Assembly: GCA_965112735.1 (NCBI GenBank) | Contig: OZ218960.1 | Coordinates: 930,001 to 994,000, forward strand | Length of the DNA stretch: 64,000 nucleotides | Reading direction: 5' to 3' | From: Phaeosaccion multiseriatum | Lineage: Eukaryota; Protista; Ochrophyta, other classes | Shown: positions 25,169 through 54,200 of the stretch, in pieces | Layout of the letters: the number at the start of each line of letters is the position of its first letter | Position numbering within the stretch: the stretch's first letter is position 1 | Program-made: the position numbers and the translations under genes | Notes under the pieces: model-generated | The model's database searches: none | Told to the model about the DNA's origin: nothing | Seen by the model: the letters and a program-made list of their open reading frames with translations, nothing else

Positions 25169-25660
25169 AAAGGTGCCTCTACAGAAACTGCGCGAGACAC
25201 GAATAGTGGTAGTTCTTCACATTCTCGCCGCGTGACTTCGGGTGATGCGGCACACCTGCGGCCCCGTGTTTAACAACCTGTGTTCAACAAGAAGCCCAGA
25301 AGCCACGAGAAAAAATCAATTCGGGGAGGCTTGACTACAAAGAGTCAAAGAGTAGGCCACTGGTTTCCGAGGCCGGGGTCCTCGACAGAATTGAGGTGCC
25401 TCCCGTATTCTCGATATCTATTCCCCCTTCGGGCATGACGGTTTCAGGCCTCTCTATGTCAGATTTCGGGCCTCTCTGTTCATCTTCGCGCCATTTCGCC
25501 AATATATGAGAGTAGGAAGAGGGCTGAGCCAAGATTTCAAGCCTCCAAAAAAAAATTTGATGTTTGCTTTCCCAGCAGCATCCTTCTAAGATGAGGATGA
25601 GGATGTCTACGGCGTTTATCACAACACACTTTAGCGTCTTGACAGCAGCCTATTGCTGTC

Positions 25661-51277: not shown

Positions 51278-54200
51278 TCAGAAGTGGATGGCCTTGTCGT
51301 AGGTTGCCATACACGCCTCCTTGAAGGCTTCGCTCAGCGTGGGGTGTGCGTGGCAGGATCGCGCCACATCTTCACTCGAGGCCCCGTACTCCATCGCTAG
51401 CACAGCCTCGGCGATGAGCTCTCCCGTGTTTGGGCCCACCATGTGGACACCCAAGATCTTGTCCGTCTTTTTGTCGGCCAGCACCTGGAGCGCAAGGGGT
51501 AGGGGGAGGGAGGGAGAGAACGACAAGAGAAAGGGCAAGAAAGAGAACAAAAGTATGAGAGAGGGGGATAAGAGGGAGAGAGACATGCATGCATGCAGGG
51601 AGACAAAAGCAAATGAGTGTACAGTGAGTCCCTGATGAGTGCACAACCTGCCCGTATGCTTGCCGCTGTCCCATACGCCTGTCAGTCCCTGTCCCGGACA
51701 TCACATACTACCCGGCCGAGGCGAAAGGAGGAACCGGACCCCACGCTGCGTCTGTCTGCCTGCGGGCCTGCCCACACACACCCATGTGCCTGCCTGACCA
51801 CAGGACCGTCCGATACTCCCCCACCGCCAGGCTCCCCTTCTTCTTCTAAACCATACGAATACACACTGGGAATCTTCTCACGGACCTTGATAATGCCGTC
51901 CTTCTCTCCTGTGCAGCTCGCCCTAGAGTTGGCACTGAAGGGGAACGTTCCCTTGTTGAACTCCACCCCCTCTTCCTTGAGCTCCTCCTCCGTCTTGCCC
52001 ACGGATGCAACCTCGGGATGAGTGTAGACCACCCCTGTTCGAGAGGTAGGCCATATACAGCAGATGAGAGGAGGAGAGAAGAGGAGAGCAGAGTACAAAG
52101 GAGAGGAGAGGAGAGGAGAGCAAAGGAGGGCACAGAGGAGAGGAGAGGAGGGCACAGAGGAGAGGAGAGGAGGGCACAGAGGAGAGGAGAGGAGAGGACA
52201 GCAGAGCAGGGCACATGAGCATAGAGTACTTGTGAGCACAGAAGCGGACAGGGACACGCACAACACGCACACCGTCTTGCACACACACCGTCTTACCAAT
52301 GATCCACTTTGCTCAGTCTTGCTCTCGCTCCAGGAGTTAAGGAACCAAGCCACCAAGCCACCCACCCACCCACCCACCCACCCAATCTACAAGCCAACAA
52401 ACGAATCAATCCACCACCCACCCAACCTCTCCGTGTCCGTTAGCGTACCCCTCACCCGGAATGGCGTCGTAATTCACATGCCCTGCAAAGCCGGCGAAGG
52501 ACTCCACTGCTGCAACACCCTCCTCCTCCGCCTGCAAGTGGTGCAAGTGGGAAGGGAAGGAAGGAAGGGAAGGGAAGGGAAGGAGGGGAGGGAGGGAGGA
52601 AGGAGGGAGGGAAGGACGAAAGGAAGGAGAGAGGGAAGGAAGGAGGGAAGGAAGGACGAGGCAGAAGGGGAAGAGAGAGTGTGTGAGAGTGTGAAGCATG
52701 GCAAAAGGGAAGAGTGGGAAAATGGATGATAGCTTGAAACGTTGAAACAGAGCATGCTCTTGCTGACGAGAACAACAAAAGCTACTATGGGGGCATAGTA
52801 CATTGAGACATCCAAATCAAAAATGTACCTTATGTGCGAGCATTGGCCCCGCGATGCAGTCTCCGATGGCATACACGGACTCAACTGCCGTCTGGAAGTG
52901 ATCGTCTACCTCGATGCGGCCGAGTCGGTCCGTCTTGATGCCCAGCGCTTCCAGACCCAGACCTGGCGAGGAGGCAGGCAGGCAGGCGGTAGACAGGCAT
53001 ATATATGGGCAGGCCAGCACGTTAGACAAGGGGAGGGTTGCTGTGCCTGTGAGCACTGGCAGGAGGAAGGGATCTGATGATGTGGTCCACGAGGTCACAT
53101 CAATAGCCAAGAGTCTTGTAGGAGTAAGAGTGAAAGGGGAGAGTACGCAAGGGGCTACCCTTCCGATACAAATATATATATATATATATATATATATATA
53201 CAGCAGGCGCTCCGTCTGCGGGTGGGAGCAGCAGCAGTAACCTCGGCAAGAGCTACTCTTTAAGCTTGAGCTTCGGCTTCCGCTTCAGACCCCTACATCC
53301 TCCCTCCCTCCCTCCCTCCCTCCCTCCCTCCCTTACCTTCGGTGTAAGGCCTCCTGCCTGTGGCCACAAGCACGCAGTCGGCTTCAATCACTTCCTCCTC
53401 GCCCTTCTTGTTCTCTACAGTCAGCTTCACGACGTCGCCAACCACTTCAGATGACATGACCTGTTGGTGGTCATGTTGGTGATATACGATGGAGACCCAG
53501 CGGGAAGCGTCGTCAGACTCTCTCCCCTCAGGATCACACCACACACACAACCAAAGGGCTGACCTTCGCATCACTTCACTTTCTGCCAGCACTACCCTGC
53601 TACTGCACGAACGCAGGCACGCACCTTTGTCTTGAACTTGAACTTAAAGCCCTGCTTCTTGAGCACTTTCTGAAACTGCGTGGTGATTTCCTTGTCCATG
53701 GCGGGGCACACGCGGTCCAGAAACTCAACGACCGTCACCTTTGGAGGAGGGGAGAGAGAAAGAGAGAGGAATAAGAAAAAGAGAGGAATGGCGAGAGAGA
53801 GAGAGAGAGAGAGAGAGAGAGAGAGACAGAGAGAGACACACACACGCACACAGAGAGAGAGCGTGGGGGGGGGGGGGGGGCTGGTAACGGCAAAGGGAGG
53901 GCTTCGACTTTGGAACCAACGAACCCAAGGAGGGGGTGGCAAAGCACCCTACATGCGCCTCGTACCTTGGAGCCGAGCCTGTTCCACACACTCCCCATCT
54001 CCAGACCAATGACCCCCGCGCCGATGAGCACCATCCGCTCAGGAACAGCCTGGATGTTCAGAGCGCCTAGGGGGGGGGGGGGATGGTGGGTGGAGGGGAG
54101 GGAGGAGGAGGAGGAGGAGGAGGAGGAGGAAGGAGGAGGAGGAGAAGGAGGAGGAGGAGGAGGAGGAAGGAGGAGGAAGGAGGAGGAGGAGGAGGAGGAG

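Follow-up and report, generated by a model that had tools for sequence, protein, structure and literature searches.

Amplification of whole domain units in frame by unequal recombination is familiar from kringle IV-2 of human LPA, from tandem-repeat adhesins and from mucins. In Ectocarpus, the ROCO genes with their leucine-rich repeats (LRRs) and the NB-ARC genes with their tetratricopeptide repeats (TPRs) give every repeat an exon to itself, with a length divisible by three (PMC3341825; PMC11378527), and shuffling of the ROCO repeats is marked by dead or reverse-strand repeat exons within introns (PMC3341825). Here we describe a locus of three tandem genes in Phaeosaccion multiseriatum, in which the repeated exon encodes an acidic, cysteine-rich module of 80 amino acids. 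The locus lies in a stretch of 64,000 nucleotides (the window), positions 930,001–994,000 of the forward strand of contig OZ218960.1; all coordinates below refer to the window, and all features of the three genes are on its + strand. The three genes are probably intact and transcribed, and their products are probably type I transmembrane glycoproteins of the cell surface, with a predicted role as polyanionic matrix tethers or in adhesion. The way in which they are built is a known one for surface proteins of variable length; the domain itself is matched in no database that we searched.

How closely does the locus resemble these systems? As in the ROCO genes and those of the NB-ARC-TPR type, each repeat is a single exon, a multiple of three in length and of equal phase at both ends (phase 0-0 in all 21 module exons); the number of repeats differs among paralogs, and the lineages are related, the best matches of a neighbouring gene being to brown algae. 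In contrast to those genes, the repeats are extracellular, cysteine-rich modules rather than 24 amino acid LRRs or 34 amino acid TPRs, they are conserved rather than hypervariable, and a Pfam search found no ROC-COR or NB-ARC domain in any exon product. The units are plain head-to-tail duplicates of an exon plus its intron. A tblastn search of the window with the module returned 24 module-type copies and no more; every one is on the + strand and within a modelled exon, with none of the dead or reverse-strand intronic exons seen in ROCO genes. The analogy with the Ectocarpus genes, drawn in a preliminary description of this locus, thus applies to the rule of one repeat on one phase-0 exon but not to these intronic remnants. 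LPA kringle IV-2 shares with our locus a whole-domain unit that includes the intron, and in both the length of the protein changes without novelty of sequence. Domain and lineage are unrelated, however, and the copy-number differences at our locus are known between paralogs only.

Gene models were built by hand using GT..AG introns only, and short repeats and arrays were called by Tandem Repeats Finder (TRF). Gene 1 (25661..32420) has 13 exons and encodes 1421 amino acids with 6 canonical modules; gene 2 (34056..39779) has 10 exons, 1216 amino acids and 4 canonical modules; gene 3 (43165..50346) has 14 exons, 1523 amino acids and 8 canonical modules. One variant module follows the canonical ones in each, and every model translates without an internal stop. 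The order of parts is the same in all three: a signal peptide, Gly/Lys (GK) repeats, a Cys/acidic and beta-rich domain, the 6, 4 or 8 canonical modules, the variant module, a Pro/Thr stalk, a post-stalk copy of the module, a Cys-rich region, a transmembrane (TM) helix and a 21 amino acid tail. Short repeats coding for Lys and Gly precede each module array, and arrays with a period of 15 or 30 bp coding for Pro and Thr follow it. The TRF arrays and the three uninterrupted multi-exon open reading frames (ORFs) bear out the earlier proposal of three paralogs with a common layout.

The N-terminus, MKSYSS..ATLA, resembles a signal peptide as judged by eye. The stalk (161–172 amino acids) consists solely of Pro, Thr, Ala and Gly in the three proteins. 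In gene 1 it is (PTPPT)n, opens the last exon and occupies 31029..31499 (TRF period 15 bp, 31.6 copies); in gene 2, at 38331..38831, (PAPPT)9 is followed by (PTPPT)n; in gene 3, at 48952..49422, the period is 30 bp. The membrane-proximal Cys-rich domain, with 21 cysteines, lies at 31686..32234 in gene 1, and its counterparts, to which it was compared, at 39018..39593 in gene 2 and 49609..50160 in gene 3, the last with a local hotspot of divergence near 49978–50112. In gene 1 the TM helix (32280–32354) and the cytoplasmic tail together span 32280..32417, and their protein sequence is identical across the three genes. Some features are peculiar to single genes. A Tyr/Asn/Ser-rich insert (FSKTFSYSYKNWN...YYNNYYYTKSKS) at 26230–26337 in exon 2 is found in gene 1 only, as is an extra intron, which cuts the GK region into two exons, where genes 2 and 3 have a single continuous GK exon. 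Between variant module and last exon, the intron measures 485 nucleotides in gene 2 and 351 in genes 1 and 3, because in gene 2 it contains a 123-bp tandem repeat (2.3 copies, 37856–38138).

Module units were located by their FCRF core together with the flanking CAG| and |GTGAGT, edges common to all module exons. The canonical array of gene 1 lies at 27988..30428 (6 exon-plus-intron units; TRF 28013–30386, period 408, 5.8 copies, 97% match), that of gene 2 at 35955..37593 (4 units; TRF 35980–37777, period 411, 4.4 copies, 93% match) and that of gene 3 at 45064..48348 (8 units; TRF 45089–48477, period 410, 8.3 copies, 96% match). The module numbers 6, 4 and 8 given in the preliminary description are thus reproduced in this assembly both by exon coordinates and by TRF. 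Module exons measure 240–255 nucleotides, a multiple of three without exception, and the introns after them 148–168 nucleotides; these coordinates agree with the claim that the module is one symmetric phase-0 exon duplicated along with its intron. The variant module exon of gene 1 (30429..30677) encodes 83 amino acids with 57% identity to the canonical module in an alignment, and those of genes 2 (37594..37845) and 3 (48349..48600) were found by the same splice-flanked core search and alignment. A further divergent copy lies directly 3′ of the stalk, within the last exon (31500..31682 in gene 1), with 42% identity and all eight cysteines aligned. The cysteine pattern is C-x2-CC-x13-C-x9-C-x10/11-C-x6-C-x13-C. 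The 80 residues include 19 Asp and Glu against 4 Lys and Arg, 11 Pro and 8 Cys (24% D+E, 10% Cys, 14% Pro and 12% S+T).

Among the 18 introns that follow canonical modules, seven are exactly 168 nucleotides long and lack an in-frame stop (28240–28407, 28648–28815, 29870–30037, 36210–36377, 36621–36788, 45319–45486 and 45730–45897), while variants of 167 nucleotides contain stops; the ORF at 28006–29178 passes through two of the stop-free introns. We considered whether in-frame retention of these introns could be meaningful and rejected it: 7 of 18 is about what chance gives for one ancestral GC-rich intron copied repeatedly, and intron depth is zero in the RNA-like run described below.

The units are 93–100% identical, with the same splice sites throughout; pairwise comparison of the 18 canonical units gives a mean identity of 97.0% in exons and 93.7% in introns. 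A tract of 2,706 bp (34040..36745 = 43149–45854) is 100% identical between genes 2 and 3 and contains the gene start, exons 1–4 and modules 1–2. Its edges are sharp, and outside it the two genes are 88–97% identical, a pattern that suggests that gene conversion or duplication took place here very recently. Since this identical 5′ tract stands beside 4 modules in one gene and 8 in the other, module number has changed recently. Gene 3 is a mosaic, its 5′ part being that of gene 2 and its 3′ part alternating between gene-1-like and gene-2-like tracts. Variants of exon and intron also recombine among units; the seventh module of gene 3, for example, has a gene-1-like exon and a gene-2-like intron.

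The duplication unit took along the last exon of a convergent neighbour, a dihydrolipoamide-dehydrogenase-like gene. The real exon is at 51281–51646 on the − strand (Pfam Pyr_redox_dim, 1.3e-20). A copy after gene 1 (33503..33755, − strand) matches it at 100% over 253 bp by blastn (Pyr_redox_dim, 1.8e-19), and a second copy after gene 2 (40766–41023, − strand) is more decayed, with 93% identity and insertions. Taken together, the sequence patterns show ongoing unequal recombination and gene conversion, and from this we infer that a gain or loss involves an entire module and keeps the frame. Because the units are of phase 0, nearly identical and alike in their splice sites, such events need not break the frame. 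Inside one array or from one paralog to another, misaligned homologous recombination or gene conversion would add or remove whole modules. The suggestion that modules can come and go without frameshift is therefore supported by the 4 versus 8 modules beside an identical tract and by the mosaic unit haplotypes.

Are the genes expressed? Public runs were available as short Logan contigs only, none of which spans a module array, and they were mapped on 33950–39900. Run X1 has high depth over exons and none in any intron bin; its contigs show GT..AG joints precisely at 34222/34468, 35106/35339 and 35645/35955. A joint from module end to module start (37027->36377, depth 754) represents splicing of one module to another, mapped to an equivalent copy. 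Two CAGs stand six bases apart at the 35955 acceptor of gene 2, and the first module takes the upstream one, giving an exon of 252–255 nucleotides; the first-module boundary was shifted to the upstream CAG in all three models, and the frame is unaffected. Gene 1 is expressed, because a 604-nucleotide spliced X1 contig across exon 4 matches gene 1 in its letters and 0.96 of the words sampled from that gene's last exon are present in X1. The X1 contig over the junction of exons 1 and 2 has gene-2/3 letters, and X1 has no contig on the 3′ end proper to gene 2 (38925–39900). Runs X3, X8 and X9 have unbroken coverage of the introns, as genomic DNA of this organism would. We therefore find expression of gene 1 and of gene-2/3-type sequence, with splicing at the predicted joints.

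We compared exons with introns in the 12 internal canonical units. Divergence is 2.2% in exons and 5.1% in introns, and segregating sites number 14/240 in exons against 23/161 in introns (Fisher p = 0.005). The variable exon sites comprise about 8 nonsynonymous and 8 synonymous ones plus one 3-nt indel, and the eight cysteines are invariant in 24 of the 24 module copies. Because exon divergence is below that of introns, sites split about 8:8 and the cysteines never change, the modules are, as judged from these comparisons, under purifying and not diversifying selection. Nei-Gojobori estimates of the ratio of nonsynonymous to synonymous divergence (dN/dS) were also made by domain. The ratio lies at 0–0.33 in the variant module, in the module copy after the stalk and in the TM helix with its tail; for the helix and tail we count 0 nonsynonymous and 2–3 synonymous differences. 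The membrane-proximal Cys-rich domain, at 1.06–1.58, is the fastest-diverging part of the protein, with all 21 cysteines kept; between genes 1 and 2 it has 61 nonsynonymous and 11 synonymous differences (Fisher p = 0.0015 against neighbouring domains). The beta-rich head exon has a ratio of 1.4. The system had been called diversifying, which is wrong for the module sequence, whose exons are conserved above introns and whose proteins are near-identical, and right for the membrane-proximal domain and for copy number. Pseudogenes were considered and set aside, the ORFs being intact, the transcripts spliced and the exons conserved above introns.

Does the module have relatives? Protein queries were single-exon pieces. 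In Pfam, no exon product matched a family at E ≤ 1 apart from two sub-threshold matches to domains of unknown function (DUFs). A profile of the module had no match among PDB chains at E ≤ 10, and the 312 amino acid C-terminal region gave only noise among PDB sequences (E > 0.4). An exhaustive HMMER search of 1.84 billion protein representatives with the module profile gave 0 matches. A word-indexed set of 5.8 billion proteins, queried with the C-terminal 305 amino acids and the module alignment, and scans of metagenome and viral contigs for the module were likewise empty. Best scores in the ESM Atlas, 0.62 for the module and 0.73 for the C-terminal region, are in the range of chance; the closest protein-language-model neighbours of the module are unnamed diatom proteins, and a neighbour bearing an LNR domain scored only 0.51. 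The statement that the module is not a named family is thus borne out by every collection searched. As brown-algal proteomes are among these collections and yield no match, the module is either restricted to its lineage or too divergent to detect. A viral origin of the genes was rejected, since they have many introns and are sited among housekeeping neighbours.

What might such a protein do? The earlier view of it as a surface protein agrees with its sequence features: a signal peptide, a TM helix, a short tail and a stalk wholly of the type rich in Pro, Ala, Ser and Thr (PAST). The ectodomain would begin with a polycationic Lys/Gly region (net charge +24) and a Cys/acidic and beta-rich head, followed by a string of 5–9 strongly acidic 8-cysteine modules (about −15 per module; −79 to −147 per array). 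Beyond these would come the stalk of some 160 residues, presumably O-glycosylated, the module-like copy, the 21-Cys membrane-proximal domain, the TM helix and the invariant tail. There is one N-glycosylation sequon in the entire ectodomain. We picture the module as a disulfide-knotted, probably Ca2+-binding bead, the number of which may determine how far the ectodomain reaches, its valency or its charge. The protein may tether the plasma membrane to the anionic polysaccharide matrix or mediate adhesion. It is tempting to see in the faster-evolving membrane-proximal domain a partner-specific part that would differ in function among the paralogs.

Several known surface proteins are built on similar lines. 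Fungal wall-integrity sensors of the Wsc/Mid2 type, comparable in architecture only (PMC8307928), have a signal peptide, a Cys-rich head, a long O-glycosylated Ser/Thr/Pro stalk (predicted in our case), a single TM helix and a short cytoplasmic tail, as the proteins here do. Unlike them, our proteins have no WSC domain (PF01822) in any exon product searched against Pfam; a large Cys-rich domain stands between stalk and membrane, and the ectodomain is far larger. The combination of a signal peptide with a long PAST-rich region carrying TP, AP or SP dipeptides is the sequence signature of mucin-like and chimeric arabinogalactan protein (AGP)-like proteins, and our proteins carry it. The chimeric AGP-like and extensin-like glycoproteins of brown algae (PMC8307928) share the signal peptide, the long PAST-type region with TP and AP dipeptides and the presence of unrelated globular domains. 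In contrast to these, a TM helix takes the place of a glycosylphosphatidylinositol signal, of which none is evident; the Cys-rich modules occur in no described AGP, and glycosylation is in our case a prediction. Diatom pleuralins combine a Pro-rich domain with repeated PSCD domains of about 90 amino acids, rich in P, S, C and D, and the acidic, Cys-rich (ACR) domains of frustulins bind Ca2+ (PMC4557024). Compared by description, these stramenopile surface or wall glycoproteins resemble our proteins in having a Pro-rich region and acidic Cys-rich repeats of 50–90 amino acids of similar composition.

A kinship of role with these diatom proteins is one of the alternatives to be weighed. The genes might encode a structural, metal-binding protein of the cell wall or of a biomineral, an analogue of frustulins or pleuralins, possibly shed from the membrane. 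In composition the module fits what has been published on ACR and PSCD domains (PMC4557024), a Pro-rich domain adjoins the repeated Cys-rich ones, the host belongs to the stramenopile lineage, and the nearest Atlas neighbours, at their score of only 0.62, are from diatoms. Yet the module profile detects no similarity to such proteins, or to any other, in the PDB or the 1.84 billion representatives; the TM anchor and the strictly conserved tail favour a membrane-resident protein; the host is not a diatom, and a neighbouring gene has its closest relatives in brown algae, a group without silicification. We regard this reading as improbable. A system of recognition or variation, in which rapidly evolving proteins, either receptors or the targets of pathogens, predators or gametes, would draw their diversity from module number, exon skipping and positive selection, seems to us rather unlikely but less so. 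The repeated modules, nearly invariant and under purifying selection, do not behave as such a system would have it; the ratio in the membrane-proximal domain does not exceed 1 significantly; the proteins have no signalling domain, just a tail of 21 amino acids; and the paralogs at this locus number only three. No skipped isoform was seen, though contigs of identical repeats could not reveal one. Against these points stand the elevated dN/dS on a conserved cysteine scaffold near the membrane and in the head exon, the tandem cluster of paralogs with mosaic gene conversion and the possibility of in-frame skipping between identical splice sites. In addition, genes with one exon per repeat are candidate immune receptors in brown algae (PMC3341825, PMC11378527).

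The module numbers, or part of the triplication, could also be artefacts of assembling a highly repetitive locus. Near-identity of the units, some neighbours being identical in both exon and intron, would invite such errors, as would the 2.7-kb identical tract common to genes 2 and 3, and the short contigs, none of them crossing an array, offer no check. Most units, however, have their own combination of exon and intron variants, the codons of the stalk, the proximal domain, the GK region and the flanks all set the three genes clearly apart, and gene-1-type and gene-2/3-type sequences both occur in independent runs. An artefact is in our judgement highly improbable, and we keep to the reading of three genes for membrane-anchored tether or adhesion proteins. 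Several points nevertheless weigh against it or parts of it. The numbers 6, 4 and 8 rest on one assembly, and adjacent units are 100% identical in two places (modules 3 and 4 of gene 1; modules 5 and 6 of gene 3) of the kind at which assemblers err. Run X1 is read as RNA solely from its exon-only depth and spliced joints; the run-finder label, "DNA?", is a guess. The excess of dN/dS over 1 in the proximal domain has a binomial p of 0.16 and could be explained by relaxed constraint. The Pfam models of Ca2+-binding domains TSP_3, Ldl_recept_a, EGF_CA and Notch gave no match to the exon products even at E ≤ 1. AlphaFold2 models had a predicted local distance difference test score (pLDDT) of 37.7 for the module alignment and 31.5 for the alignment of the C-terminal 312 amino acids, both unusable, and since there is thus no usable structural model, it is from composition that we guess at a disulfide bead and at Ca2+ binding. 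A fuller version of the proposal, with a new lineage-restricted, disulfide-knotted Ca2+-binding domain in a length-tunable sensor of wall integrity or adhesion, module numbers that shift over population time scales or by splicing, and positive selection on the proximal domain for its choice of partner, seems to us distinctly doubtful.

The locus offers a clean, transcribed case outside animals of domain-number evolution through duplication of an exon plus its intron. The mechanism, described in brown algae for LRR and TPR repeats, acts here on extracellular Cys-rich modules, and the 8-Cys acidic module without detectable relative is a candidate for domain libraries. Because surface and matrix proteins of stramenopiles related to brown algae are poorly known, a candidate that is anchored in the membrane and has a conserved tail gives a practical starting point. 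Among protists, tandem-repeat surface genes and orphan Cys-rich repeat proteins are no rarity, and we regard the finding as solid rather than very surprising.

Three further features were noted on the + strand near the locus. Just upstream of gene 1, an ORF of 696 amino acids (23078–25168) encodes a CCHC zinc knuckle and a protease motif of the DSGAS type and has a (CA)33 microsatellite at its end; its sequence is consistent with a remnant of a retroelement gag-protease. At 60944–62122 there is a single-exon gene of glycosyltransferase family 15, the neighbouring gene referred to above. Its best matches are brown-algal at 44–51% (Discosporangium 51%, Hapterophycus 44%, also Undaria and Laminaria), which places the host among the ochrophytes, inside the brown algae or close to them, and its nearest Atlas cluster consists mostly of giant-virus (Nucleocytoviricota) members. 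Downstream of the dehydrogenase gene, at 56268–58760, are exons resembling those of translationally controlled tumour protein (TCTP), recognised by eye from MLVYKDIISGDELCTD....

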